Of a stretch of 64,000 bases of DNA, positions 2,144 to 50,626 are shown in pieces. The notes under the pieces were generated by a model that saw only the letters and a program-made list of their open reading frames with translations, did not search any database and was not told the DNA's origin. The DNA is from Magallana gigas. Its lineage: Eukaryota. The DNA lies in contig NC_088854.1 of assembly GCF_963853765.1 (NCBI RefSeq), positions 44,206,001-44,270,000 of the forward strand, written 5' to 3'. The stretch's first letter is position 1, and each line of letters begins with the position of its first letter. The position numbers and the translations under genes are program-made.

Positions 2144-3343
2144 ATCAAAGTTGCAATTCTGAACGAACAAAATGGTCCTTACAAATCAAGTCTTTATACA
2201 TGTATGAAACTGGATTTCAAAAGGTAGAATTACAAGCAAAAATATTACGCTTGCTAATGAAATTGAGCACTTTACTTATCAGGAAAATAGTATATATCAT
2301 AATCCTTTATGATATTTGATTCTGACCAAATTAAAAAAAACTTTTTTCACAACAAGATTCAGCTTTTTGTTCTTATAATTTTGGATCGTCATAACAGATA
2401 AAAATACGTCTTCTATAATGATTTCAAAACGTTCGTTACTAAATATTGATGTATCATATTAGATTATATATGGTGTAGCTTATAAAGAAACTGTAGACAT
2501 AGTGCTCCATAATGACTTAGGTTATCGAAAATCTCGCTTGAAAATATAAACTAAGGCTGATATGACGATGCATTGAATGACGACTATATTTGATGTACAT
2601 GTAGCAGTTTAAAAGCTTGAATCAGGGGATGCTGTCTATAAAAAGAAGCGTTTGAATTGGCTGATTTGGTATCTACCTACTCTTACTCTGTATTCATTTG
2701 ATATTAATATTTTTTATTCAGAAACTGCATAGCTAAATACATGTTCCCTGCATCAGGACTTCAAAAACTAATCACCCGATTGTTTAATATTGTAAAGAAA
2801 AATATCAAGTGCCTCATTTCATTTTTCAGCAAAGTTCTTCATTGATAAAACGCATCAATTTCTTTTGATGCAGTATCTATTTTGTTGCAGTTTATTCTAA
2901 AGAATTCACAATAGATTCACAACAGATACTAACTGTAAAAGTACAGAAACTTTATTTTATTGAACTTCATTTAATCAATGGCAGGCTCACTTGGCAATTA
3001 ATATTTGGGACTGTTTCGTAACGCACTATGTCTTTCGCCTCTAAATTCACCAAACAATATATACCACTGATGTCAATGTTTAACTTGCTGCTGACTTTTA
3101 AACACGCTAACCGACCGGCAATCGATTTTTGGAAGGCAGTTTGCAATTCGCTATTTGCAATTTAAAAGTGAACTGCATTCCACAACGCAGTTCCCAATTC
3201 AAAATTTATATTTCAAATTTTGGGTCTGAAATATTCAGCGTCGTATACAAGTGGTGTACCACTACCACTGTAGAAATATATTGAAGTGGCTACATCTTTT
3301 AAAAAAAAAAACAAATCAGCAAATATATTTGATATACACAATT

Positions 3344-4194
3344 TTAATTCAATTTCAAAGCAGGGATATTTTTACAGAAATGTGAGAGTCCTGCACTCAT
3401 GGTGGTGAGATCCTGAGCGGTGATAGCGACTGTAGGACTGTTAGTGTCGATCAAATCAATGATGGACTTCTACAAGAACAGACAAATATCACATTAAATA
3501 ATGATTAAATAATTAGAATTGAGGAAATCTTCAACAGTTCCATGGATTTGTTTGAGGATATAGTACTGTAAAGGATTGAAGATCATACCTCGATGGCATG
3601 GAGTCCTGTTGTGGTATGTACACTTGTTTGTTGATCAGCTGTGAGCATGTATAGGTAGCAATGACGCTGTGTCTTAACGACCAACGTGTGCTATAATGGA
3701 ATGTAACAAAAGTACATTAACTATTGGAATTCAAAGACAAAATTAATTCATTACTACGTACATTGTAGGGACATTAAAACAAATGATATCTCTTTTTTTT
3801 TACTGTAAAGAAATACTTTTTTTAAAGTTTAAAGAGGAATCAAATCAAATAGATAAGTAAACTTCACAAGAATTACCGAATGAGCATCATAGTGGAACAG
3901 AAAACTTTCGTTCACATTTGGTTCATGTGTAGGTCCAGTATGATGTCCATGTACATGTGTGTTATGTGGATGATGATGACCATGATGTGCAGTTGTGGTC
4001 ATACCAACAGCCTATTTCAAAAACAACATAATATTTTTCATGATATCATTGGCATGGTTATAATATCTCATTATGATTTGAAGTAACTGGCATCTATCTG
4101 GTGTATTTTTCTTTTTATGCCGTTATTGTTCTTCACACATCAACTTACATTCATTTTATCAAAATGTACGAAACACAAAGTTAAAAGGTAAGAG

Positions 4195-4255
<61 letters not shown>

Positions 4256-4300
4256 TCTTACCACAGACACAGTACTAATCAAGAAAACAGCGGAGAACAT
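3344..4300 (-). CDS. Secreted His-rich BRICHOS-like protein, paralog A1 (133 aa)
   Basis: complement(join(3344..3469,3589..3690,3877..4011,4262..4300)); all GT-AG, phase 0; MFSAVFLISTVSV/AVGMTTTAHHGHHHPHNTHVHGHHTGPTHEPNVNESFLFHYDAHS/HTLVVKTQRHCYLYMLTADQQTSVHTTTGLHAIE/KSIIDLIDTNSPTVAITAQDLTTMSAGLSHFCKNIPALKLN*. Confidence refers to the gene model; the BRICHOS label is less certain. Confidence 0.9.
4200..4252. repeat. (GA)n microsatellite in intron 1 of A genes (also about 15025-15085, 24966-25023, 34969-35055)
   Basis: Direct reading; length and purity differ per copy. Confidence 0.95.
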
Positions 4301-4355
4301 TATTCTATGAAGTGTCGGTTCAAATTGCGATTGTTGAAAAAAGAGCAGTCATTTG

Positions 4356-4363
4356 CTTATATA
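4356..4363 (-). promoter_or_regulatory. Putative TATA box of A1 (TATATAAG); equivalents at A2 15197-15204, B1 8990-8996 (TATAAAA), C 50692-50699 (CATAAAAG)
   Basis: Located about 55-75 nt upstream of the ATG in all three paralog types although flanking bases differ. Confidence 0.55.
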
Positions 4364-5739
4364 TGCAAAAGTACTCTCTGTTATCTCGATTTTGGCACGA
4401 TACTGTATTAAAAGTATACCATATACATTTCTTTGGGCTACGTAGTGCGTACTGAAGCACATGAAACGTGAACGAACTATTAGATCTAATGTCAAGGTTC
4501 ACATAGTCTAACATCAGATTCACGTTTCAGTGTATTATAGTACTGGTGTCTTATATTCCAATGTTTTGTTTATTTTCGATTTACTACTGTGTATGTATTT
4601 CAGAATAATTAATTTTAATATTACTCTTTGAATGATGTTTTATGGCAAATGATTATTCAGGACAGAATCATTGTGACATAGGAACGCTGTTTGCTTGATT
4701 CTGAAATCCATGACATATGTAGTAACTTGCATTTCTTGAGCTTGCAGTTTTAAAAAAATCCATCAATGTAATTATTTTAATTTTTCTGTGTCCCTGATAG
4801 ATGGAAAGCTTAAAGGCTCAGTACCGATATTCTATTGCTATTATCTATGTTACCTTTATGTAAATACGCTATCCTTCAATGCAAATCAGATAAATGTTAA
4901 CATGCAATAAAATCTTCAGAATCTGTATTAAATTAATTCATTTGTTTATCATTTGTATATCATCGTTTGTTTTACCTATCGAATTTGGTATATTATTCTT
5001 TCATAATTTTTACTTTTTTGCGACATTTGTACTTACATTTTTCGATATGTATGATTATGAACTTTATAAATATCACAGAGGGTGCTCGCCACCTCGAAAA
5101 TTTTGTAACATTCACTGATACAACTCTGTATCATCAATCATGTACCAGAGAATTAACTAATTACAGTTTTTGTCTCGAATCTTCAAGTACAGTATAAATG
5201 CACTCAATATTGATAATGTATGCATTTTAGCAAACGCAATGTAAAATGAATTGTATGTTCTATGGTATCAGAGACATAAATAACATATATAATCTCTGAT
5301 GGTATGGTCTATGTCTATATGCCGGCATATACAGATAGCTTAAATTGTTAGCACGTATTTTGATTTTCCATTGCTTTATTTCAGCAAACGTCAAAATAAA
5401 CACTCAGGTAAATTACATAAGAGACGTGATATTTGTATAAAGAATATAATTTGGAACTATTTTTTTACGTGCTGCTAATTTTTACGAGTTTTTGTAAATA
5501 TTAATGCAGCAATTAATTTATCAAATCAAGCTGAGAAGAAAGGAAAAAAATCATTAATCGTGCTTTGGTCACTACATTGTATAAACGATGGCTTTAACTT
5601 CAAGTTGAAAAATTTTAGCATCTTTAATAAAAGTAAATAATCTATGAATTATATACTTATACTACATATAGGTACATTAAAAGTGTGCGTTCAAGCTTTG
5701 GAGTACACATAACTTGTACTGATGTACTTATCACTTTAT

Positions 5740-6092
5740 TAAGAAATAAACAGCAATTTAAAAAGTTCACCGGGATATGAAGTTGGTTGGTCACGTGATC
5801 AAATCCTGTGAAACCCGAAGGGCTTCTCGGTAGATTTGATCACGTACCAACCAACTTCATATCCCGGTGAACTTTTTAACATTGCTGTTTATTACTTATA
5901 TTTACGTTTGAAAAAGACAAATCGCCAAGAACTGTTAAAATTATCGAGAATTTTTGTTTATAATAATCTAAGCGAAAACGGTAAGCGCGTGCTATGATCA
6001 TTGTGACGTCATGAAAAAGTTCATACAGAATTGAAAGTTTTCACTATTCTATAGGTTCATCTAAGGAAGCACATTTGCAAATGTAAATATAA
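5740..6092. mobile_element. ~350-bp non-autonomous element with a long internal hairpin (5746-5892); copies at about 16563-16916, 26544-26896, 36784-37136
   Basis: Near-perfect ~60-bp arms (ATAAACAGCAAT...GATCAAATC / GATTTGATC...ATTGCTGTTTAT); absent from the homologous A flank, which reads TTAAAGAAAATAAAAACT. Confidence 0.7.
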
Positions 6093-6465
6093 GAAAATAA
6101 AAACTAGTAGAATCTTGAGATGTTTAGGAGATGTTTAGGAAAGTCCAATCACTGAGTGATAATAACAATTTCAATTCTCGAATCCAAAAACAAGTATTAC
6201 GCCTGCATTACAAAGTAAAAAAAACACAAATATTTCTTTTTTTATTTGTTATATAAAGTACTGTATATAAATAAGATCAAAGTTACAATGCAAAAGGTAG
6301 AATTACAGACAAAAATATTACGCTTGCTAATGAAATTTTCATATCATCAAAATAGTATATATCTTATTTTTTAATGATATTTGATTCTGATCAACAAAAA
6401 AACGTAACTTTAAACTTTTTTGTAACTTTGGATCGTCATAACAGATAAAAATAAGTCTTTTATTA

Positions 6466-6980
6466 AAGCATTGAATGCTTATTTTTGAATGATAACGCGC
6501 GGTATTCAAGTCCTCTACACCGCTTGGTTTTACGACGACATCCAAAAATAAGAATTCAGTGCTTATATTTATATTCATACTTATGTCTATTTATATGAAA
6601 TATATGTGTATTGTAACTGTAAAGCCATCATATACGCTATCAGTCAGGAATAAAAAACAGATACATGGAACAGCTATACTATCATGCTATTTAGTTTGCT
6701 TCCGCGACTAAAAATATAGTGCCAGAAACTTTGTAGAGAAAATTCTTCTTTATTATGGAGTAGATATAATTATATAATTTAATGATTATTTTTCAAAAGT
6801 ACTATCAAACTGATTATGTTAGATTGAACGTTTCATTCAATCTTACAAAAATAAATATAGTCAAAACACGAGAAGGCGTTAATTTGTGCACATGGCGCAT
6901 GAATTATCAAAGTGTATTCATAGAAAATTTCCAATGCAAACATAAGGGGAAATATACACTGAACGTAAATATAAATATCT
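6466..6980. mobile_element. B-flank-specific ~0.5-kb insertion starting with a ~100-bp foldback (6466-6564); present in all four units
   Basis: AAGCATTGAATGCTTATTTTTGAATG vs CATCCAAAAATAAGAATTCAGTGCTT (23/26 complementary); absent from the A flank; right boundary approximate. Confidence 0.5.
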
Positions 6981-7855
6981 TAAAACGTGTGTTACTCAAA
7001 ATTAATGCATCATAGATAATTTGTGGTGAAGCTTATAAGGAACTGTAGACATTGTGTTTTATTATGACTTATGTCATTGAAAATTTTGCTTGAAAGTATA
7101 CAATAAGGCCGATATGACGATATACTGAGTGACGACTATATTTAATAAAATGTTAACAGTTTAACAGCTTGAATCAGGGGATGCAGTTTATAAAAGAAGC
7201 GTTTTAGTTGGCTGATTTGGTATCCGCCTACTCTTACGCGGTATTTATATGATATATAATTTTTTTAAAAAGTGGCAAGCTAAATACCTGTTCCCTACTA
7301 CCGCAGATGTTTAATAGTGTAAAGAAAAAATACCAAGTGCCTCATTTTATTTTTCAGCAAAGTTCTTCATTGATATACATGTAACGCATCAATTTTATTT
7401 GAGGCAGTGCTTATTTTGTTGCAGTTTATTCTTAAGAATACACAACAGATTAACAACTGATACTAACTGTATATAGTACAGAAATTTTTATTTTATTTTG
7501 AACTACAATCGATCAATGGCACGCTTGGCAATTTTTGCAACTATTCCGTAATTCATTATATCTGTAGGAACATTTTTTCGCTCTAAATTCACCAAACAAT
7601 ATATACTACTGATGTTGATGTTTAATTTGCCGCTGACTTTCAAACACGCTAACCGACCAACAATCAATTTTTGGAACGCAGTTTGCGATTTGCTTTTTAC
7701 AATTTAAAAGTGAACTGCATTCTATAACACAATTCGCAATTCAAAATTAATTTATCAAATTTTGGGCCTGAAATTTTCAGCGTCATCTACTAATGGTATA
7801 CCACTACCACTGTGAAAATATGGTGAAGTGGCCACATTTTTAACAAAACCAACAA

Positions 7856-7917
7856 ATCAGCAAAGGTATTTGATATACACAATTTTATCAGCAAAGTTAT
7901 TTGATATACACAATTTT
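7856..7917. repeat. 31-bp tandem duplication at the start of the 3' UTR of all B genes
   Basis: ATCAGCAAAGGTATTTGATATACACAATTTT x2 in B copies, single in A copies. Confidence 0.85.
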
Positions 7918-8934
7918 AATTCAATTTCAAAGCAGGCAGTTGTCTACAGAAATGTGAAAGTTTTGCACTCATGGTGGTGAGATCCTGAGCTGTTACAGCG
8001 ACTGTAGGACTGTTAGTGTCGATCATATCAATGATAGACTTCTACAAGAACATAGCAATCAACAAATAAATGAATAATAATTGTTTTTGGGGGGACGCTG
8101 TCTGAGCATGATGAAAATCACTAAATATTCATTTGTAACCGGTCGTGAAGATTTGCATATAGCGTTACAGAAATGTTCATGTTTTTAATGCATTCATAGG
8201 ATTTAAATCATAACCATGAAAAGAATGACGCGTGTCGGAAATACCAATATCATATGGATGAAATTGATTTAAGATGATACCTCGATAGCATGGAGTCCTG
8301 TTGAGGTATGTACACTTGTTTGTTGATCAGCTGTGAGCATGTATAGGTAACAATGGCGATTGGTTCTCACGGCCAAAGTGTGCTAAAAAATTTAACAAAT
8401 GCATTATCTAACAAAGTGCATATAAACCGAGTGCTCATTTAGTTTTAATTTCAACTTAATTCGCATCATAAACTTAAAGAAATTTTGAAGATAGAACTGA
8501 CGGAAATCTTCAAAACAGTTTGGATTTTCTGAAAGGTTGAATCTCTTAAGAAACAGATCTTTAAATTCAAATTCAATGGATATATAGTAAGTATTATTAT
8601 CAAATACCGTCATGGCATCATAGTGGAACACAAAAGATTCACCGATGCTTGGTTCATGAGTAGGTTTTGAATGGTGTCCATGCAGGTGCGTGTGATGTGA
8701 ATGGTGGTGACCATGTTGAGCAGTTGTGGTCATACCAACTGCCTATAGCAAAAACAAAATTGCATAGTACATGTATATTAAACCATGCGAGGTGAAAATT
8801 TTATTGATAGCGATAAGACAAGATTTAAGGTATTTGTATTTTATAAAGAGCCAGAAAAAGAGAGAGAACATTTTATTAATATCTTCACTTACCAGAGACA
8901 CAGTGCTAATCAGGAAAACAGCCGAGAACAACAT
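7916..8934 (-). CDS. Secreted His-rich BRICHOS-like protein, paralog B1 (134 aa)
   Basis: complement(join(7916..8041,8281..8382,8608..8742,8893..8934)); MLFSAVFLISTVSL/AVGMTTTAQHGHHHSHHTHLHGHHSKPTHEPSIGESFVFHYDAMT/HTLAVRTNRHCYLYMLTADQQTSVHTSTGLHAIE/KSIIDMIDTNSPTVAVTAQDLTTMSAKLSHFCRQLPALKLN*. Confidence 0.9.
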
Positions 8935-9770
8935 TTTTCGATATATAAGTCGAATTGAAGGTTCTGTACTTCTGGCAACATCTCTCTGCTTTTATAGCTA
9001 AGTTATCCTGCCTTATCTCTCTTCTACCAAGAACCTGTATTTAGAGTATATCGTATTTATTTCTGCTGGTTAATATGGTGAGTACATGATCTGAAATTTA
9101 CGAAACATGAACTTATTTAACTAGGTAAATGGGTCAACCTTTAGCTTCACGTTTCGTCGTAAGTATACGTTGATTTTTATACACAAAATGAATTTTCTGT
9201 AAATATCAAATGTGATGTATTTGAGAGAAAATAAAAACTTACATTATTTAGTTTACTATTTCTATTTCACGGGTAAAGTAAAATAAGTCATTACGTTTTT
9301 CAGATTAAGATGGAATAACACACATGAAATAAAGTCACTCAAAGTTATAGTAAATTATTTTATTTTACAGATATAATGATAAATAAACTGAACATATGTC
9401 AAATAAGCGAAAAATTTGCAGTTTGGGGATAAAAAAAATAAGATAAAAAAAACTGCAATAATTAAGTAACAACAAATGCCCATACGGGGCATTTTAATGA
9501 TTGGTCAGAATGTTAGAAGTTAAGTAAAAAACGAAATACAGAGGTCCGAATTCACTGCTATTTAGTCCGAGCATTTGTTTTTGGTATAAATAATGTATTG
9601 TGAAGAAATTGTCATTATATTTTAGCAAACTGACTTGTTGCAAACATTTAAACTATAATATCATATCTATATTATAATCATCAACAAACTAAGGCACGAT
9701 TTGACTGAAACTAATACCAAAACAAACACATGTAAACAATAACAAGACTCGAATTATGTTAACAATACAA

Positions 9771-10707
9771 AGAAACTGGGCGCACAAGATAGTGAGTTTG
9801 CAGGAACCATCGACACGAACCAATTGGGGTTTAAATGTCTATATCCTCGAAATGCTATGTACAGGTTTGAACAAAAATTGATTACTCAAACTATATTGTG
9901 TTGAGAGAGTTTAAGTGCAAGTCTATGCTTTCTGAAAAGGGAAATGAGGGGTAAACCGATAAAACTTTATATTGGAAATTTTAATACACATGCATATATA
10001 TTTTAATTGAATTATACTGTATATCATAATAAACTAGTAATAAGAACAGAAAATAGTGTTCATACGGTAGAAATCAATAACGACTAATCAAAATATACCG
10101 GTATCCTAGTATAATTCAACATAATGTCATATCAACATACATTTTAAAAAAAAGTTTAAAAAAAAGTTAATTTGAGTCTCGAGCAGGATTTGAACCCAAA
10201 ACACTGCGTGAATGTCTTCAAAATCCAGACCGAAACCAGTGAGCCATGCGAGACTTTGAAAATTGCGGTATAAAGTAGTGTTGGAGACAATATTGTCATA
10301 TCTTTGGACTTTGTTTTATTATCTTCCAAAAATATTTTGAAAAGGTATATAATTAGTCATCTCTGGGTCATCTCTCCATCTTTTTTTAAAAAGCGACGTT
10401 TTTAATGTTGAATTAAGTCATCTTTACAAGTTTAAAATTTGTGGAGAGAAGACCCAGAGACATCAGAATCATTTAAAAACAGCTGTAAATAAGTACGATT
10501 TTGCATCAATTCCGCCGTGTTGCTATATTTAGGCCCATATTATGACAAAACCTTTTGCATTTCAAACATTTTTCTGCCCATTCTACGTCCAACAGAAACC
10601 AAATAACGGTTATTATTCGGAAAATGTCAAAAATTAATCAATGAAATTTTCACTATTCTTGTGCGCCCAGATTCCTGCCGAATCCACATCTTAAGCGCCC
10701 ACTTTCT
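9771..10707. mobile_element. 937-bp Kolobok-like non-autonomous DNA transposon, unit 1 only
   Basis: TIRs AGAAACTGGGCGCACAAGA / TCTTAAGCGCCCACTTTCT; TTAA on the right, left TSD damaged; empty site AATACAAATTTAAAGAGC in units 2-4. Confidence 0.75.
10176..10254 (-). other. Degenerate tRNA-like sequence inside the Kolobok-like element
   Basis: A box TGGCTCACTGG, B box GGGTTCAAATCC, GTCTCG/CGAGAC acceptor-like stem; D and anticodon stems broken. Confidence 0.5.
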
Positions 10708-39004: not shown

Positions 39005-41043
39005 TTAATTCAATTTCAAAGCAGGGAGTTGTCTACAGAAATGTGAAAGTCCTGCACTCATGGTGGTGAGATCCTGAGCTGTTACAGCGACTGTAGGACT
39101 GTTAGTGTCGATCATATCAATGATAGACTTCTACAAGAACAGAGCAATCAACAAATAAATGAATAATAATTGTTTTTGGGAGGACGCTGTCTGAGCATGA
39201 TGAAAATCACTAAATATTCATTTGTAACCGGTCGTGAAGATTTGCATATAGCGTTACAGAAATGTTCATGTTTTTAATGCATTCATAGGATTTAGATCTT
39301 AACCATGAAAAGAATGACGCGTGTCGGAAATACCAATATCATATGGATGAAATTGATTTAAGATGATACCTCGATGGCATGGAGTCCTGTTGAGGTATGT
39401 ACACTTGTTTGTTGATCAGCTGTGAGCATGTATAGGTAACAATGACGATTGTTTTTCACGGCCAATGTGTGCTAAAAAATTTAAGAAATGCATCATCTAA
39501 TAAAGTGCATATAAACCGAGTGCTCATTTAGTTTTAATTTCAACTTAATTCGCATCATAAACTTAAAGAAATTTTGAAGATAGAACTGACGGTTAGGATT
39601 TTCTGAAAGGTTCAATCACTTAAGAAACAGGGGCTCGTAACATAAAGGGTACTTAAGTCTAAGACAGTGCTTAAGTAGGACTTATGTACATTCTTAGACT
39701 TAAGTCCGTAACTAGAAGAGTGCTTAGCAAGGACAATTTACCTAAAACTTAGGCAGCCGGTAGAGGTGACTTAAGTATGTCTTAAGTATTGTTTTCAAAC
39801 ATTTAGAAGTTTCATTGTTAATTATTTCAATTCAGCCTTTGAAACAGATTATTAATCACATATTCACACAAAACCAATATATAAATGTTCACCAATATAA
39901 AAGTTTTGATTAAATTGATATAAATTTTAATAGTGGTCCTAAGGAGCTGTATTGATTTCAATATAATATGTATCTGGGCTGCTGAATAGGTTGTAAACAC
40001 GTAATGGTCAGTTCAAAAGAAGTAACTATAATTATGTAAACTCGCAAATCTTGCGAAATTGAAAAAAGGACGTTCGAAGACAGAAAAACCATCAGTGATT
40101 TTAAAGACGATTGCCTCATTTCATTACTGTAACAATGTTTATCCACTTAATGAAAAATCATACTCAGAGTATGTAAATTGCCTTATTGGTGGGGTAAGAC
40201 AAAAGATAAATAAATAAATCCACTAAATTATTCTATCAAAACAAAGAAGTAAGAACAACAGACTGAAAAACATTGCCTAAGATCCATCGCTTTGAGCTTT
40301 TTAAAAATTTTAAGTACGTATGTACATGTATGCATACCATGCAACCTTGAATTTTGTTTCTGTATATTTACATCTACCCAATCTTATATCAAAGATATTA
40401 AGAATAAACAAGATATTAATCTAAGACAATGATTTTATTATCAATGCATTCAAATTCATCAAAAGATAATATGAAAAATTCATTCCTAAATTTTAGCATA
40501 AGCATGACTTAGCTAAGACTTTGCTAAGTTTGTTTTATGTTACGGAATAAGACATACTTAAGTAGGACTTACTAGTATGTAGGTCCTAAGATTCCGCCTA
40601 AGTCCTACTTATGAGCCTACTTAAGTCAAAATCTTAGCATGCTTTATGTTACGAGCCCCAGATCTTTAAATTCAAATTCAATGGATATATACTAAGTCTT
40701 ATTAATAAATACCGTCATGGCATCATAGTGGAACACAAAATATTCATTGATGCTTGGTTCATGAGTAGGTTTTGAATGGTGTCCATGCAGGTGCGTGTGA
40801 TGTGAATGGTGGTGACCATGTTGAGCAGTTGTGGTCATACCAACTGCCTATAGCAAAAACAAAATTGTATAGTACATGCATAACCATGTGAGGTGAAAAT
40901 TTTATTGATAGCGATAAGACACATTGTGAATCCTTTAAGGTTTTTGTATTTTGTAAAGAACCAAAAAAGATAGAGGACATTTTATTAATATCTTCACTTA
41001 CCAGAGACACCGTGCTAATCAGGAAAACAGCCGAGAACAACAT
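39005..41043 (-). CDS. Secreted His-rich BRICHOS-like protein, paralog B4 (134 aa, diverged; MITE in intron 2)
   Basis: complement(join(39005..39130,39370..39471,40713..40847,41002..41043)); PSINEYF vs PSIGESF, AVKNNRHC vs AVRTNRHC, MSAGL vs MSAKL. Confidence 0.88.
39631..40658. mobile_element. 1028-bp PIF/Harbinger-like non-autonomous element in B4 intron 2
   Basis: Perfect TIRs GGGCTCGTAACATAAAG / CTTTATGTTACGAGCCC; 3-bp TSD CAG; empty site AAGAAACAGATCTTT in B1-B3; many subterminal CTTAAGT motifs. Confidence 0.85.
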
Positions 41044-43658
41044 TTTTCGATAGATAAGTCGAATTGAAGGTTCTGTACTTCTGGCAACATCTCTCTGCTT
41101 TTATAGCTTAGGTAAGTATCCTGCCTTATCTCTCTTCTGCCAAGAACCTGTATTTAGAGTATATCGTATTTATTTCTGCTGGTTAATATGGTGAGTACAT
41201 GATCTGAAATTAACGAAACGTGAACTTATATAACTAGGTAAATAGGTCTACCTTTAGCTTCACGTTTCGTCGTAAATATACGTTGATTTTATACACAAAA
41301 TGGACTTTCTATAAATATCGGATGTGATGTATTTGAGAGAGAAAAAGCATTCACTATTAAGTATTATTAAGTATACTATTTCTATACACGGTTGAAGTAA
41401 AATAAGTCATTAAGTTGTTAAACTTTCAGATTAAGGTGGAATAACACACACGAAAAAAAGTCACTCAAAATAATAGTAAATTATTTTTATTTTACCGATA
41501 TTATGATAAATAAACTGAACATATGTCAAATAAGCGGAAAATTTGCAGTTTGGGGATAAAAAAAATTAAGATAAAAAACCTTAAATAATTAAGTAACAAC
41601 TAATGCCCATACGGGGTATTTACATGATTGGTCAGAATGTTAGAAGTTAAGTAAAAAGCGAAATACAGAGGTCCAAATTCACTGCTTTTTAGTCCGAGTC
41701 TTTATTTTGGGTATAAATATTGTACTGTGAAGAAATTGCCATTATATTTTAGCAACTGACTTGTTGCAAACAATTTATACTATAATATCATATCCATTTT
41801 ATAATTATCTACAAACGAAAGCAAGATTTGACAGAAACTAATACCGATACAAACACATGTGAACAATAACAAGACTCGATCGAATTACGTTAACAATACA
41901 AATTTAAAGAGTTCTAAACTCGTGTGTAACTCGATATTTAACATTCAAATCATGGTAAAACATTATAGGTATCTATATAAATCATTCTAAACATTAAAAA
42001 TGAGAAACTAAAATTTTAAAACTGAGCCCAAATCGTGTCTTTGTCTAGAAAGGCGATTGTAATCCATTCCAAAATTGATCTGACCAGGCTGAAATGAACT
42101 GACTTTTCTTCGTATACTGGTTAAAATAATAAGATTCTTAAAACTTTTTAAACTTTTTAAACCTTTTCAATTCATGGCTTTACTTAATTGAATATCAATT
42201 TTAATTTAATTAGCTATAAAAGATTATTTTAACATCATTCACTTATATCTTTTTCACTTTTGGTGTTTACTTTGCGTGGATTATTTCTTATTAAAGTTAC
42301 ATATATATACATGTACATTTAAAGCACAGACTTCGCTGATTTCACGGGTTTACCTCAGGTTTAATTTCTTATAATTGTCCAAAATTGTAATAATGTTGTA
42401 CAGTTTTTGTTTTCAACTTTTGCATCAATTTAAAGGCCACGTTATTGTTGTTTTTTATTGTTGTTTTTATATGTGTATGTATATGAAAAACTTATCTCTG
42501 TCATCTATCTTCAAAAAATGACCATTCGAATTCCCTACAAATCTGTTGTGTTAGTGTTTTATGTAGGTGGCGGGCCAAACGGAGCGTCATCATATCAGTA
42601 GTCAGTTATCCATAGAGGTTGTTCTGATTTGGTCTTTTGATTGTTCTCATTGTGAGTCCTTGTACTTTCTGTCCGTTCAATGTCTTGATCAGTATGAAGG
42701 TTGTCGAGTGCTATATACTACAATTAGGACATGTTTATCTAAATGGGTTCATATGGTCACGTTTGAAATATGTCTCAAACTATGCTGTTATATCAAATCT
42801 GTAACTTTCTTAAATGAAAAAAAAATGAAATAGTTAATGGCCATAATTATTTTTAAAAACTCCAAAAAAAAAAACAAAACTACAAATGATCGATTAGGAT
42901 AAAACTTTTCTTTAAAAAAAGTTCAACAAATACAATGTAGAATAAGGAGCTATATTTTGTGTTGACATGTTAGGCGTTGTAATATTATTTCATTTCATTT
43001 GTATTGTATAAATTTTTTTATGCATTTAAAATTTTTTAATATTTAATGTTTAATTTACCATTGTTTTGTGTAAATTCTATTTCTTTTGAGTATTTTATCA
43101 TTTATAATTGTTGTATTTATTTAATAATCCTTTATTTGTAATAAAAATGTTGGTTTCATTCTTAAATTCTTTTTCATTTAAATTTCGATTGTACACATTT
43201 TGAAAATCAATTTTTGTGAGGGAAATCAATTACAGCCCAACTGTTATTCCATCAAGTAAGCTTTGCTCATTTATTTACTGAAATGTAACTTTTTTGAAGC
43301 TAAAACTTGACAAGTTGAACGTGCACATTTTAAGCTCAGAAAATGTTTAAAGATATCATAAATCTTCGAAAGTTTAATACAATAGAATAAACCTATAATT
43401 CAACATACATAGTTTGTATATTATTCGGACCCTTTCCTTTTTACTTTGTTATTTACATTGTAGACAATATCTAATGAACTATACAGTCTAAAGTGAAAAA
43501 TGATGAACGAGTTTTCTTCTTCAAAACTACGCTTTTTTATCAAAGAAAAACGTGAAGCCATATTGACTATGTTGTACTATTGCCTAATTCCTTAACTTTT
43601 TTTTTTTGGTTTCGTCTGAAACATTGGACATTTTGGGAAGTGCCACACGGTAAATTAG

Positions 43659-44397
43659 TAGGGATGTCAACGAGTACTCGAGTACTCGACTATCGCTCGG
43701 TCACGCCGATCATCGACTAAAATATTCTTAGTCGATTAATCGTTATTAAATGAAGAAGATGAATCAAAAACAATTTTTTTCTTAACGCAGCAATTTTGGA
43801 TTTCGATGGAAAATAAGAGTTTTCTTTTCTCTGCATTTTAGATCATGTTACACTTTGTTCCACCAAACGGGTGTCCCCGGTATATTTTTAAGCGGATAAA
43901 AATTGATCGCTTTTGAATTTGTAAATCAAATTATTGTTTTAAATAGAAGTACTTATGCAAACATGTACTTGAAGAAATCAATTTGTAGATCATTAAATCA
44001 GTTATTTATTGGTCCAGGATTAGATGTTTGTATTAATCAAAAATTTAATCATTTCATCTCATGGCGTTTGTTTAATCATTAACTTTAATTGTTGATTTGC
44101 CAGGGCACGGGACAATGACTTCATACCATGAAACAGGTGACATTTGATTTGCCTAAGATGATATGCAGCTCAATTTTGTGTATATAAGCATCACAAGAAA
44201 AGGGGAAAGCTAAGACATCATCACAAGTTTTTACAAGTTTATGATATAAGATACGATGTATGTGACAGACGACGAGTATAGAATTATTTGATTTGAAAAG
44301 GACGCACAGTTTCAAATAAATCAACGAGTACTCGACTATCGCTCGACTAAAGGCTCCAATTAATCGACTAAGCCAACCGAATAAAATTGACACCCCA
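43659..44397. mobile_element. 739-bp hAT-like MITE, intact copy at the array right end
   Basis: TAGGGATGTCAA ... TTGACACCCCA termini; 8-bp TSD TAAATTAG at 43651-43658 and 44398-44405. Confidence 0.85.
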
Positions 44398-45115
44398 TAA
44401 ATTAGCAAAACAATATGAAACACCTCACCACCACGATCTCAAGTTAGACAAAAAGTGATTTGAAAATGGGCATCGCATACTGCTTTAAAATATATGCACA
44501 GTCAACATATTTTAGTCCGAATATAACCTGTTTAAGTTTCTGTTGGTTAGCATCGTTCCCACCGAATAATCGGTAAATCAGTTTTTCAAACAACTATTTT
44601 TCTATTTGTATTGAATACACATTTTATTCATAACGTAAAACCGTCTGTATTTTCAATTTTTATTTTTTATTTTGATTGAATACTTTCTTCTTTTCATTTG
44701 TAATGTGTTCTGTGGGTTATTTATCTTAAATAAGTATAATAAGATACGACTTTTTCAGTTTTTATCCACTACAGGTTTGTACTTAGACCGCTAGGAATGT
44801 TATCATAACCCCTTTTAATCGTTGCAGTCACGATGTAAGATGTACTCTAATATATAGGTTGGTTTGGTTATCTTGATAGACGGGGTTAAAATGTACATGT
44901 TTTCTTAAAATTTAATGTGAAATTTGGAACATATGTTTCATTTAAAATTTAAATGACGAGGAAACTTTACAAATGGTCTTCAAATTAATTTAAATATGAT
45001 TTCATATTTATCAGGTATGATAAGTAGTAGTAAACAAACTATTCTCTTTCTTTTAAAGGCTGTTTCTAACTTACAGATGATGTCAGATAACTTTTTAATG
45101 GCCCCTGTAATTCAA

Positions 45116-45116
<1 letters not shown>

Positions 45117-45178
<62 letters not shown>
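45117..45178. repeat. (GA)n microsatellite (others at about 46910-46988, 49290-49318; (CT)n about 57715-57753)
   Basis: Direct reading. Confidence 0.95.
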
Positions 45179-45182
<4 letters not shown>

Positions 45183-45852
45183 TATAAGTTTTAAAAAATT
45201 CTTACAAAATACATAAATTTGCTTCCACCCTTAAACCGTTCTTTACTTTACTTTTTGGGAGAATTGATCAGTCTGTCAAAACGTAATTTGTGTTTGATTT
45301 GGTCAAAACCGCTATGATAAGTACAGTATTTTTTTTTTGGTACCTTGTTGTTGTCTGAATTTTATTTTTTTTTCTTTCTGGTTCATAATTCTTTTTATTT
45401 GTTTATTTTTGCATACGTTGTATCTGTGCCCCCGGGTCCCTGTTTGTAGGTCTGTAATTTCGCCTTTTCCAATTTAATGGTTTGACAATATGCAATATCA
45501 ACTGTTTCTTTTTTCTCTTTGTTCTTTTTTATTTAATTCAAAATGACATTTTTTTATCATCCCTACTTATATATTACTAAAACCGATTTGGTTTGACTTT
45601 ACCGATCGCGTCGCGTTCAACTCTTTCAGCTACGTCATACATAAACAATACCCGCACCTTAACCACAATTTTTTTATTGGTGGATTCAGCTTACCGCTGA
45701 TTGGCTGCTGGTTAACTAAGACTAAATTATGCACGGACAGAGCAACAACATATCTGAGAATGAAAAATTCACATGGGTACTCGTGACTGTCGAAATTGGG
45801 CTATTTTTCGAAAGTGTACACTTGTGATAAAACAATACATACATGTACGGTA

Positions 45853-46215
45853 CACTGGCGTCGGAAGCAAATTGAAAGTGGGGGGGGGGGCTAGACTAAT
45901 CCTCAGAAGTATTGAGAAAAAAGTAATTCCCAAATTCATGAAAATCCTAATCCGTGGGGGGGGGGGGGGGGGGGGGGGGAGAGTATACCTATACTTCCAA
46001 AAGAAAAAAAATTTACTTTCCCAAATTTTCTTTTCCAACATTACCAAATTCCTATTCCGTGGGGGGGGGGGGGGGGGGGGGGACTGCGAGAAAAAGTGGG
46101 GGGGCTGGACCCTCTATCATACTATGTTTCTAATGGTTTGGTATAACTTTGAAAAAAAAGTGGGGGGGGCTAAGCCCCCCCTAGCCCCCCCCCCCCCCCG
46201 GTTCCGACGCCTATG
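45853..46215 (+). mobile_element. G-run-rich MITE with 5-bp TSD, copy 1
   Basis: CACTGGCGTCGGAA ... TTCCGACGCCTATG termini; CGGTA duplicated on both sides. Confidence 0.85.
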
Positions 46216-46906
46216 CGGTACATAACATATATAGCTGTAGCTCTATGTATAAATTTTGGGTTAGAAAATATATAGCTACAGTGCATACAATACTTACATG
46301 TACAAAAAAACTTTAAGGCAATTTGCCGCATATAAAAATAACGCTATTTTTGAAAAAAATAATAATTCTTCATTTAGTTTACCCAAACCTTCTCCTATTA
46401 AACAACCTTCTTCCGTACTCGGAAGGCGGATCAAGAACTGTATTTTTTATGTATGAAAACAAACCATTGTTCATGTATGGAGCTGGTGATCGGCGGTTCA
46501 GAGACAGGTAAAATAAAGAAATCTGCAGTAAATTGTTTGTGGATATTTTAGTATATATATATTACACCGAAAGTGATAGGGCAACAGAAGAGAAACGAAT
46601 CGGACACTTGTCTAATGAAGACACACATTTACAAACCCCCTTGCACTCTCCACTTCCGTCTCGTTCTTTCACACCATCGTTCAATTCTTTTATTGACTGT
46701 CGATTGCCGATCGAAAGGTGTAGAAATCGAGGAATTCATATCTTTCACTTTGACTGGCAAGTTAGTAGGTAATACATGTGCATATTACACATTTACGGTA
46801 TTTACATTAATTGAACGCTTAGCACATGCAACTTCTAAATATTATATTTTTTATAACGCCGTACTCTGGACCGTAGCTTGAGTTGAGGCTATGGTTTAAC
46901 GCCCGT

Positions 46907-46993
<87 letters not shown>

Positions 46994-49070
46994 CACAAAA
47001 ATTAAACAATGGGGATAGTCGATTTTGAATGAATAATATTGGGGGAAATGAACTGTTCTGAGAAATCCTTCAGCTCTGGCATTGCATAAGCATTTACTGA
47101 TAACTCCGCCTAACTCAACCACTCATAAAGTTTTCACAACGGTGGCGTGTATAATTTATGCATGACGTAGCTGACAGAAATGATCGTGACGCTATAGGAA
47201 AAGTCAAACCAAATCGGTTTTGATCATATACTGAACATGCATGCAAAATAAGCTTCAAATTGCATCGATATGACAGTAAAGTATGGCTTTTGCTAGTATA
47301 TATTTAATCTCTCTATCAAAACCAAAAAAGAAAAATTAAAAACATCATCTGAGGCAGGTATCACAGTCTATACTTAAAATTGCTAGTACACACATTATCA
47401 CGGGAAATATATCGCGAGAGCACTGTGATGTCATCCATGACCTTTTTTGTTTTTGTTTACGTATCTCGACTCAATACGAAGATATGGAAGTATGTAACAA
47501 ATCTCTTTGGTCTCGCCAAAGCTGGGGCAGTACTCAGAACGTGTCTTCAGACCTCAAGACACCGTAAATTACGATTTAAATGGCGGCTATTTTTGGCTTC
47601 GCACCACGGGTGAAAACATTAGAGAGCATTATGGGACGTAGACAAAATATTGTTTCATGAATCTATAGGTTTAGCTCGTTCTTTTTCCCGCGTACATTGG
47701 TTCTTAGAGCTCGCTTCTCTTGATATAACCCTTTAAAGAGGTTTGTTCCTCTGTTTTGGGTAGCCATTTTGAGTCACCTCTATTCTAGAAATCATCATAT
47801 ATTGATTCTACCTATAAATTCAAATTTTATAATGCCAATTAAACTATCTTAAATAAAATAGTAATGAAAAAAGTACATATTTACAGAGTTTAGTATGGGA
47901 CTATATTTTGTGGCGGAAGGTTTTTAAGAAGAAAATGAACATTTTTCATAACTCAGTTGTTTAAGAGTACCGTCACTTTAGCTTCCTTATTTTCAGTCCA
48001 AACAAAATTTCCAGATAGTTTGTGCATTAGGATATCTTCAATTTGTTACAAAAAACATGATTTTACCATTTTTCAATATTTATATCGACACTTATTGGCA
48101 AATTTAACTTATATTTCATAAAAGTCAAGGAAAAATGAATCCCAATGTTTGCCTAAAATCAGCTTATTTCATGCCATATCTCAAATTTTACATAATAGGC
48201 CCATACGTTTTGTTTATTTTTCTGAAATTTTAAGATTTTTCTGACAAGTTTATCATAATGTGAGAAAAGGTTTGAGACTGTTAAATAGTTTCATTACATG
48301 TTGAATTGCTAATGGATAAAAATAGCGCTTTATCAGTGCAAAAAGGTCAAAATATCAAATAGGTGAAGAAATTGTAACATTTTTCTTTATGATAATTTGA
48401 TTTTTATTTATTTTAAATAGTATAAATTTGTATTTGGTGCCATGGTTCATTTCGATAATAAAATATAGAGGGAAAAGCGATTTATGTGCAATCTGCACTT
48501 TCAGTGCAGAAAATTCATATTAAATAGACCTTAGCGCCAAAATGAGGCATATAGACCCCAAAATTTTGTTTTGAATTTTGGTTAAGCCATGTGTGTAGAT
48601 TAAAAAAAAAACACTTTAGGAAAAAACTTTCAGACTTTGATCGCAGGATCCAACGTCCTTAAGTTTACCGGTGACTTTGTGTAACTAAAGAACCGCGGTT
48701 CGTATAGGCGTTCAATATTTGCTCGATTCAAATTATCACCCCATGATATTCAAAGAATGATTCTTTATTACATGTACTTATATTTATATTATTTTCAATT
48801 TCTACACTTTTGAAAACAACATTTCAAAACCACTATTTTTTCAGGTAGCACATGCCACGTAATTACTACGCGACTCAGCCAATACCATTTTCGGTTATTT
48901 TGCTGTAAGGCACGCCTACTTTGTGTCGCTCATCTTTTATGAAATTATTGGTTGATTGGCTTCAAAATTGATTCTTAATGTTATCACAGACAAAGACAGT
49001 TGAAAATGAATATTCATTGATGATGACAAATTACAAACAGAATGCTGAAATGAAATAACGACGTCTTTAT

Positions 49071-50626
49071 TCAGTTCAATCTCATGGCCGTGAGTTTTCC
49101 ACAGAAATGTGACAGTCCGTGGCTCATGGTGGTGAGGTCTTGTGCCGAGACGGCGGTGGTGGCGCTGTTGGCGTCAATCAGATCGATAACGGTCTTCTGC
49201 AAGTCAGATGTACGGGACTCAGACTACAGCTTACATGCATTTAGAATTCGATACCAATAAGGAAGAATACAGTTACATTTTAAAATGAATAGAGAGAGAG
49301 AGAGAGGGAGAGAGAGGGGACCATGGGACACACACACAAACAACCTAGGCTTGTTTGTTACCTCGATGGAGTGAAGGCCAGTTGATGTGTGTACTGTGGT
49401 TTGTTCATCGGCTGTGAGCATGTACAAGTAGCAGTGTTTGTGCGTTTTCACTGCAAGGGACGTCTGTAATTCATCAAGTACCGACAATTTTATTATTCAT
49501 ATAATTAGAGAGAAGATAAAAATTATAATTAATAATGGTAAAAAGGTTGGGAAAAAGTGCTGTCTTTGCAATATCACATGATGTTAGTTGGTCAGGTACT
49601 CTGGGCTGTTAAAGAACTCTTCCTAAGAAGCAAAGACGTGTTTTAAATTTACTACGTGTACATTCTTACCGAATGAGCATCGTAATGGAAGGAGAAAGCT
49701 TCGTTGATATTTGCCTCGTGCGTGGAGTGATGATGGTGCGGGTGTGACACATGGGAATGGTGATGGTGTGGGGGTGTTGTCATACCCACTGCCTATTAAA
49801 ATAGAAATGTCAGCAAATGCATATCACAGTGTGAAAGTTTGTAACCCTTCCAAGAAGACACATCGACAGTTCTTCAGTTCCTTTTTAGCAATTCTGTGTC
49901 ATGTTTGCATACGAATTCAGTATGAATGCTCAACACAACTTAGGTTAAAAATGATCTTGTGTGAAAACTCCAGTCGTTCTAAGCTTAAATAGAATTATTG
50001 TAGCAAAGTGTTCTTCCATTCCAACAAAAATAGGTAACAGAATAGATTGAACTAAGGAAAATTTATTTGCTGATACTTTTTTGTGTCAAAACACAGTGAT
50101 TCCCTCTAAATATTGAAGGTACACAATAGAGTCCATATTGGGTACACTTCGTTTGTCTTCAAAGTATATAATGCACCGTATTACAAGTGTTAAGATAACA
50201 AATGTTTGGATTTTTCCCATTACATATTGTATGAAGTCTTCAAACTCGAAATGTTCAACCAGGGCTTGAATACATGTAGCTGGATGTATGTAGTCTTTTG
50301 GTTGATATTCTGCCAATAGCCTCAAAATTATGTCGTATTCAAATATTAATTTTTCGGGTTTTTTTTTAAACAGAACTAGCGAATGCATTATGTAATTAAA
50401 CAATAAGAAACGTGTAACTCTAAGCAACACTCAAAAAATGGCAGAGTAATACATGATAACATATTTCATAGAACATTTGTTAAAATTCTAAATGTTATGC
50501 AAGACGTTCTGTAATGTAAACAAATCCTTAGATATTACGAGATCTGATAAACAAGACGGATGTTTGATTTTTGAAAAGTCTTACCACAGAAACAAGACAA
50601 GCAACGAAAACCACTGAAAAGACCAT
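49071..50626 (-). CDS. Secreted His-rich BRICHOS-like protein, distant paralog C (130 aa)
   Basis: complement(join(49071..49196,49362..49463,49670..49792,50585..50626)); MVFSVVFVACLVSV/AVGMTTPPHHHHSHVSHPHHHHSTHEANINEAFSFHYDAHS/TSLAVKTHKHCYLYMLTADEQTTVHTSTGLHSIE/KTVIDLIDANSATTAVSAQDLTTMSHGLSHFCGKLTAMRLN*; same phase-0 intron positions as A and B. Confidence 0.9.

Follow-up and report, generated by a model that had tools for sequence, protein, structure and literature searches.

A tandem gene array in the oyster Magallana gigas encoding predicted secreted proteins with a histidine-rich tail and a divergent BRICHOS-like domain

The gene array and its transcripts

The window analyzed here is a stretch of 64,000 nucleotides of Magallana gigas DNA (assembly GCF_963853765.1, contig NC_088854.1, positions 44,206,001 to 44,270,000 of the forward strand; coordinates below are positions in the window unless they carry a genome-piece prefix). 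It contains a tandem array of genes for small proteins, each of which joins a signal peptide and a histidine-rich tail to a C-terminal domain that resembles BRICHOS. Nine complete genes with four exons apiece, A1–A4, B1–B4, and C, lie on the minus strand (Table 1). The gene models were scripted from the raw sequence, A1 having first been read directly. In scans with back-translated and peptide motifs, FHYD, CYLY, and AVG each occurred nine times on the minus strand, spaced about 5 kb apart. All 27 introns are of the GT-AG type and in phase 0, and the reading frames are uninterrupted in all nine genes. The array spans the positions 3344 (the A1 stop) to 50626 (the C start). The preliminary description of this DNA had named nine complete four-exon genes with exactly these borders and had quoted peptides that we found in A1; the genes, the borders, and the peptides all hold, whereas its picture of a nine-gene cluster is correct for the window only. 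Beyond the window, a whole-genome search revealed three members just outside it on the same chromosome, namely two A-like genes and a P0010-like one that is more distant, as well as a member on the genome piece C9. The array is therefore larger than nine genes, and the local cluster comprises at least twelve genes over about 78 kb of one chromosome. Within the window, a tblastn search with the nine proteins gave zero further copies or pseudogene fragments, and an Rfam search of the whole window returned nothing.

The copies are closely related to each other. The A2, A3, and A4 proteins are identical, the B3 protein equals the B1 protein, and the B2 protein differs from that of B1 by one amino acid, with gene C being the most divergent copy. 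The repeat units are 9.9–10.9 kb long and 88–98.5% identical to each other. We rejected the possibility that the array arose through misassembly: the units are 1.5–12% apart and carry private changes (for example, a transposon in intron 2 of B4 and differing microsatellite lengths), so the tandem array is real and recent rather than a product of collapsed or duplicated sequence in the assembly.

Table 1. Genes of the array, selected exons of A1, and family members located outside the window
Feature	Position	Strand	Details
Gene A1, 133 amino acids	3344..4300	(-)	exons 4300-4262, 4011-3877, 3690-3589, 3469-3344 (including stop codon)
A1 exon 2	3877..4011	(-)	end of signal peptide (AVG), His/Thr-rich tail, THEP motif, first strand of the BRICHOS-like domain (FHYD)
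A1 exons 3 and 4	3344..3690	(-)	remainder of the BRICHOS-like domain; Cys 1 (CYLY) in exon 3, Cys 2 (HFC) in exon 4
Gene B1, 134 amino acids	7916..8934	(-)	exons 8934-8893, 8742-8608, 8382-8281, 8041-7916
Gene A2, 133 amino acids	14255..15141	(-)	exons 15141-15103, 14869-14735, 14601-14500, 14380-14255; GT-AG introns, intact frame
Gene B2, 134 amino acids	18784..19802	(-)	exons 19802-19761, 19610-19476, 19250-19149, 18909-18784
Gene A3, 133 amino acids	24175..25080	(-)	exons 25080-25042, 24789-24655, 24521-24420, 24300-24175
Gene B3, 134 amino acids	28775..29786	(-)	exons 29786-29745, 29594-29460, 29234-29133, 28900-28775
Gene A4, 133 amino acids	34177..35111	(-)	exons 35111-35073, 34791-34657, 34523-34422, 34302-34177
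Gene B4, 134 amino acids	39005..41043	(-)	exons 41043-41002, 40847-40713, 39471-39370, 39130-39005
Gene C, 130 amino acids	49071..50626	(-)	exons 50626-50585, 49792-49670, 49463-49362, 49196-49071
Family members outside the window (L002, L001)	C2:44193777-44198719 (L002), C2:44178309-44178622 (L001)		same chromosome
P0013 gene, family member (L003)	C9:19788744-19789643		different genome piece (C9)

RNA-derived contigs and reads mapped to the positions 3200–9100 contain spliced transcripts of both gene types. One RNA contig of 525 nt (run X5, record 12, depth 2761) lacks all three introns of B1, with joints at 8041|8281, 8382|8608, and 8741|8892, and run X8 repeats two of these three joints at depths of 5131 and 2869. 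Splicing of A1 intron 2 (3690|3877) is evident from X8 contigs at depth 3800 and from two raw X21 reads of poly-A RNA, and that of A1 intron 1 (4011|4262) from an X1 contig. All skipped stretches have CT..AC as their plus-strand ends, corresponding to GT..AG in the orientation of the genes. The splice junctions, which the preliminary description had left to be checked against RNA, are thus reproduced for three introns of B1 and two of A1. The depth of the exon contigs reaches thousands, compared with single digits to tens over most of the flanking DNA, with the exception of the positions 5740–5960, where all four runs show a depth peak and many loose ends because a dispersed repeat lies there. 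A further low-depth contig (X1, record 1, 3655–5122) has intron 1 of A1 removed and intron 2 kept, extends about 820 nt upstream of the A1 start, and diverges by about 4%; an unspliced RNA, an alternative transcript, or origin from another copy could each account for it. A TATA box is located 62–63 nt before the ATG in all eight A and B genes (TATATAA at -63 in A1, TATAAAA at -62 in B1), and in B1 the box is followed, about 29 nt downstream, by the end of the X5 contig at 8967.

Several repeats accompany the genes. Intron 2 of B4 (39472–40712) is 1241 nt long, compared with the usual 225 nt, because of the insertion of a dispersed repeat of about 1 kb, for which the genome contains at least 224 candidate copies; the frame is unaffected. 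Much of intron 1 in every A-type gene is taken up by a (CT)n microsatellite (4190–4261 in A1), whose length varies among the copies, this intron measuring 233–281 nt. The dispersed repeat at 5740–5960 is about 220 bp long, matches itself on both strands in the manner of a miniature inverted-repeat transposable element, numbers at least 1598 candidate copies genome-wide, and occurs in each unit (for example at about 16563–16784, 26544–26764, and 36784–37004).

Protein architecture and relatives in other molluscs

The nine proteins share one order of parts: a signal peptide, the residues MTT, a histidine-rich stretch, a THE(P/A) motif, and a domain of about 85 residues. The signal peptide, assigned by inspection, consists of a hydrophobic stretch of 13–14 residues followed by AVG and measures 16–17 residues, ending in AVG, in all nine proteins. 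The hydrophobic stretch is shorter than a membrane helix needs and is kept across the family, and secretion of the array proteins is highly likely. The tail holds 11 His within 31–35 residues in each of the nine genes (31–37% His), with HxH and HH runs. The mature proteins would be about 12.6–13.2 kDa with isoelectric points of 6.5–7.0 and 17–19 His, and they contain exactly two Cys, the third Cys of gene C being located within the signal peptide. All nine stop nine residues after Cys 2, inside the last strand of the domain. A dibasic or furin-type site between the His segment and the domain is found in none of them, which suggests that the tail probably remains attached to the domain. The preliminary description had attributed this set of features to every gene, namely the AVG-ending signal peptide, the His-dense segment, the two-Cys domain, and the lack of a dibasic site after the His segment, and the gene models agree with it throughout.

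Comparison of the paralogues revealed purifying selection. The ratio of nonsynonymous to synonymous substitution rates (dN/dS) is 0.24–0.29 for A versus B; for comparisons with C it is about 0.1, at a saturated dS. For the His tail alone, dN/dS is 0.16–0.18 at a dS of 0.9–1.05, which means that the His codons have drifted between CAT and CAC with His itself retained; the tail is under purifying selection. The CAT/CAC usage differs by paralogue type (A2 15/3, B1 10/7, C 8/11), with the number of tail His constant at 11. The identity of the units, the paralogue dN/dS of 0.1–0.3, and the spliced transcripts together show that the array is more than a chance feature.

A profile built from 11 oyster proteins matched 81 cluster representatives (clusters at 50% identity, E <= 1e-3) among 1.84 billion proteins. 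The named members come from Magallana, Crassostrea virginica, C. angulata, Saccostrea, Ostrea, Pinctada, Argopecten, and Mytilus, and from the gastropod Gigantopelta. They are labeled 'uncharacterized' in the databases, with the exception of two long Mytilus entries bearing automatic cadherin-type names and one Pinctada 'DUF732 domain-containing protein'. Most members share a common plan of a signal peptide, Thr-Thr, a tail rich in His, Thr, and Pro (15–37% His), a THEP-like motif, and the domain, and the succession of a His-rich tail and a THEP-like motif recurs in oysters, the pearl oyster, the scallop, and mussels. The tails of other oyster relatives contain 5–14 His. In the literature searched, we found no description of the family, of His-tailed BRICHOS proteins, or of a mollusc BRICHOS subfamily. 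The check on whether the family had already been characterized, called for in the preliminary description, therefore favored its reading, as no paper or database name gives the family another function.

Relationship of the domain to BRICHOS

Folding and most searches were performed on database twins of the array proteins, P0001 (a Magallana gigas protein listed as uncharacterized, identical to gene C at 128/130 residues) and P0008 (identical to B1 at 132/134). The AlphaFold model of the C-type protein, calculated from 11 oyster sequences, has a predicted local distance difference test score (pLDDT) above 90 at residues 45–130 and a disordered N-terminus, and that of the B-type protein, calculated from 54 sequences, has a domain pLDDT of 98. 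In order, the predicted domain has three strands, two helices of which the first is short and the second long, a further strand, a helix pair ending at Cys 2, and a last strand; the BRICHOS fold consists of a beta-sheet against which two helices pack. In a Foldseek search of the PDB, the top six matches of both models were the six chains of 2YAD, the BRICHOS domain of proSP-C (E 0.16–0.74, template modeling score [TM] normalized by target 0.47–0.60), so that 2YAD is the best solved match for both, and the structural check proposed in the preliminary description came out in favor of BRICHOS. Alignment to 2yad_D with VIA-align gave a Z of 6.7 and a root mean square deviation (rmsd) of 2.6 Å over 68 residues. 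An exhaustive, Foldseek-independent search of 48,161 representative PDB chains ranked 2yad_A first (Z 6.2, rmsd 2.9 Å over 68 residues) and a BRICHOS trimer entry third, with a Z of at least 5 reached by two chains only.

Searches of predicted structures pointed in the same direction. Among the Swiss-Prot AlphaFold models, 26 of the 30 best matches were BRICHOS proteins (BRICD5, SP-C, ITM2B/C, chondromodulin, and gastrokines), and in each case the alignment covered the BRICHOS region of the match. In the AlphaFold cluster library, the first eight matches were uncharacterized proteins with mussel- or scallop-type accessions, which we take to belong to the oyster family, and the named proteins after them were mostly BRICHOS. 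A shape search of the ESM Atlas returned three mollusc 'hypothetical' clusters followed by SP-C and gastrokine-2 at TM 0.50, and by language-model features the nearest named cluster was GKN1 (0.89).

Sequence comparison links the family to the Pfam model PF04089 through its relatives. Sub-threshold matches to PF04089 were obtained for 5 of the 50 aligned relatives. The relative P0056 reached 24.0 bits (E 4.7e-5) over the positions 21–90 of the 91 of the model, and P0039 matched the positions 10–91 at E 0.0067; the oyster profile in turn matches P0056 at E 9.7e-8 and P0039 at E 3.1e-10. BRICHOS domains have a conserved Cys pair that connects helix 2 with a strand and a highly conserved Asp that closes an early strand. 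The two Cys are the only invariant columns among the relatives (50/50), and in the models one opens strand 3 and the other closes helix 2. The Asp of the FHYD motif ends the first predicted strand and is D in 40 and D or E in 45 of the 50 relatives. The Cys pair and this Asp are kept in all nine genes of the array, in line with what had been read from the sequence earlier. In addition, the family has a motif of its own, VHT..GL...E, at the start of the long helix (H 39/50, G 42/50, E 46/50), and a His two residues before Cys 2 is frequent and conserved almost like the BRICHOS hallmarks; the motif and this His might form a metal site in the domain.

A published list of five BRICHOS features includes a signal peptide, a Cys pair, an Asp, a convertase site, and a C-terminal hairpin peptide (PMC9714404). 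Three of the five, namely the N-terminal signal peptide or anchor, the Cys pair, and the Asp, are present in the array proteins. The other two are likewise missing from proSP-C, a known exception. Comparison with proSP-C (2YAD) showed the same order of strands and helices, an equivalent Asp and Cys pair, and a domain that ends the polypeptide, with 68 of 77–79 residues aligned. In both, the candidate partner segment is N-terminal to the domain. The preliminary description had regarded such an N-terminal partner as an undescribed arrangement, which does not stand, since the mature peptide of proSP-C is also N-terminal to BRICHOS. The sequences are only about 12–18% identical, and proSP-C is a type II membrane protein with a poly-Val transmembrane helix as the partner, a second disulphide, and a long loop, whereas in the oyster proteins the signal peptide is cleavable and the tail, rich in His, is hydrophilic. 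The architecture is thus nearest to proSP-C in the order of its parts, and it is nearest to the gastrokines in overall plan. A precedent for recognizing such a subfamily is OAF, which joined the BRICHOS family in 2022 through AlphaFold models and profile comparison (PMC9714404). Like the oyster family, OAF lay outside the coverage of PF04089 and was recognized from its predicted structure and hallmark residues; unlike the oyster family, it retains the convertase site and the C-terminal hairpin. Taken together, the fold, the relatives, and the hallmark residues suggest that the domain very probably represents a divergent BRICHOS subfamily. Elsewhere in the genome, among short exons, one canonical BRICHOS exon was located (C8:5620775-5620891, 27.3 bits).

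Candidate functions and alternative explanations

On balance, we lean toward interpreting the locus as a recently amplified tandem array of transcribed genes for secreted proteins of about 13 kDa, each with a signal peptide, a His/Thr tail, and a terminal divergent BRICHOS domain, for which a role in chaperoning or metal handling may be proposed. BRICHOS is an ATP-independent chaperone whose conserved Asp has been implicated in pH regulation (PMC9714404). By analogy with other BRICHOS domains, the oyster domain would be a holdase that works without ATP and protects polypeptides prone to aggregation and to beta structure; such an activity is conceivable but somewhat doubtful. The imidazole-rich tail would serve as a reversible, pH-sensitive arm that binds Zn, Cu, or Ni and switches near pH 6–7, and metal binding by the tail is reasonably likely on chemical grounds. 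Both proposals derive from established knowledge of BRICHOS and from the chemistry of poly-His. On this view, the protein could be abundant outside the cell, as a chaperone or metal buffer with a state set by metal load and pH, and the tandem amplification would serve dosage. A bolder version, which we regard as tentative and rather unlikely, is a mollusc-wide BRICHOS subfamily in which the domain serves the N-terminal metal-binding tail, so that the protein would be a metal- or pH-gated secreted chaperone or a chaperoned metallopeptide.

Few families of BRICHOS domains are known, and the domains attract study as natural chaperones against amyloid. The present family would add a large invertebrate subfamily (81 clusters in bivalves and a gastropod) that is unusual in having no C-terminal peptide and a conserved His-rich tail, and that Pfam-based annotation at present overlooks entirely. 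If the tail binds metal, the proteins would offer a simple system for the regulation of BRICHOS by pH and metal and would be candidate players in the Zn and Cu physiology of oysters. If the domain indeed serves the tail, BRICHOS would be linked to extracellular metal handling, a role that to our knowledge is undescribed for any BRICHOS protein, and could contribute to the exceptional Zn and Cu load of oysters. Mussel plasma histidine-rich glycoprotein, the histatins, and the clavanins resemble the tail in composition only; they show no homology to it, and none is fused to BRICHOS. The oyster plasma metal-binding proteins segon and dominin were also considered and rejected, segon being an unrelated protein of about 30 kDa and dominin being similar to Cu/Zn superoxide dismutase.

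Several observations count against this interpretation. Pfam gave no match even at E <= 10, neither for exon pieces nor for the full-length database twins, and every family member scanned fell below the PF04089 gathering cut-off of 25 bits. The term BRICHOS-like in the preliminary description is accordingly upheld by the fold searches, the relatives at up to 24.0 bits, and the Asp and Cys pair, but not by a direct Pfam match of the window proteins. Profile searches of PDB sequences with alignments of 11 and 50 sequences yielded chance-level matches only and did not recover 2YAD. The structural scores are moderate (Foldseek E 0.03–0.7, Z below 8), a range in which small alpha/beta folds may match by chance. 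The convertase site and the C-terminal beta-hairpin peptide are both missing from the nine proteins. A minority of the relatives have few or zero His in the tail. In both AlphaFold models the tail is disordered and not docked on the domain, which leaves nothing in support of the idea of an intramolecular 'client'. Finally, the RNA runs were picked because they contain array sequence, which makes their depth a poor guide to expression.

Gastrokines (GKN1–3) are also small, secreted proteins with a signal peptide, a short spacer, BRICHOS, and no membrane anchor, and this shared plan raises the possibility of a gastrokine-like mucosal protein. The function would then reside in BRICHOS (epithelial protection or signaling), and the His/Thr/Pro segment would be a flexible, possibly O-glycosylated spacer without a role in metal binding. 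The proximity of GKN1 in language-model features is consistent with such a protein, as is the match to the shape of GKN2 (TM 0.50/0.58), both being similarities of features and shape only, with no sequence match to the GKN family. The Thr-Thr directly after the cleavage site and the Thr and Pro of the tail are conserved, and tail His are missing in some relatives, as a spacer would allow. Against a plain spacer, every one of the nine genes retains 11 tail His although many codons have changed synonymously and the order has been rearranged, and the 15–37% His in the tails of most relatives is beyond what a spacer needs. Gastrokines themselves are vertebrate stomach proteins in which a further segment follows BRICHOS on the C-terminal side and a His-rich tail is missing. 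We consider a gastrokine-like mucosal protein unlikely.

Improbable as well is a precursor of a His-rich bioactive peptide, similar to histatins or clavanins and with metal-dependent antimicrobial activity, in which BRICHOS would be the pro-domain in the order seen in proSP-C and the tail would be freed by a non-convertase protease. BRICHOS proteins are generally pre-pro-proteins (PMC9714404), and the antimicrobial peptides of polychaetes derive from BRICHOS precursors (arenicin, alvinellacin, capitellacin, and nicomicin), which are, like the oyster proteins, secreted BRICHOS proteins of lophotrochozoans; according to reviews, BRICHOS antimicrobial peptides have been reported from polychaetes only (PMC9756803). 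Immune effector genes are typically amplified in tandem and show a high transcript depth, and a BRICHOS-domain transcript, which may or may not be related to the oyster family, was among the up-regulated genes that respond to toxin in the mussel digestive gland (PMC4203926). However, the polychaete product is a C-terminal, Cys-rich beta-hairpin freed at a cleavage site, and a hairpin of the arenicin type is not found in the oyster proteins, which have no sequence after the domain and two Cys in the mature form. The lack of a dibasic or furin-type site between tail and domain also argues against release of the tail, which is neutral at the pH of sea water and not amphipathic. Furthermore, the purifying selection among the paralogues differs from the diversifying pattern that is common in antimicrobial peptides.

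The high copy number and transcript depth could also fit a structural or matrix component (of shell matrix, mucus, an adhesive, or another secretion) that is cross-linked by His-metal coordination as in mussel byssus proteins, and His-rich secreted proteins of bivalves do occur in metal-coordinated materials, plasma, and shell particles (background in PMC6530089). This is very unlikely for a protein that is small and globular and has no repeats, no Gly-, Tyr-, or 3,4-dihydroxyphenylalanine (DOPA)-type motifs, and no acidic mineral-binding stretch; the family is not among the shell or byssus proteins in the literature found, and BRICHOS is not known as a structural module. That the domain is an unrelated, mollusc-specific alpha/beta domain with a chance resemblance to BRICHOS would agree with the moderate scores (Z 6.2–6.7, Foldseek E above 0.01), the missing direct Pfam match, and a Z of 5.1 for a bacterial DUF1488 protein (2gpi), but it is extremely improbable, as independent searches converge on BRICHOS and on every BRICHOS subfamily, five relatives match one Pfam model nearly full-length (at E 4.7e-5 among 50 scanned, about 0.002 chance matches are expected), and the Cys pair and the Asp occupy equivalent secondary-structure elements.

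Two open reading frames flank the array in the window. Directly upstream of gene C, a frame of 253 codons on the minus strand (51439–52200) encodes a thioesterase-like domain (4HBT_2, E 3e-12) and represents an unrelated neighbor gene or exon. At the other end, the GC-richer first 2 kb contain a plus-strand frame of 316 codons (247–1197) with a weak, below-threshold match to the zinc-binding zf-Di19 (E 3.6e-4).

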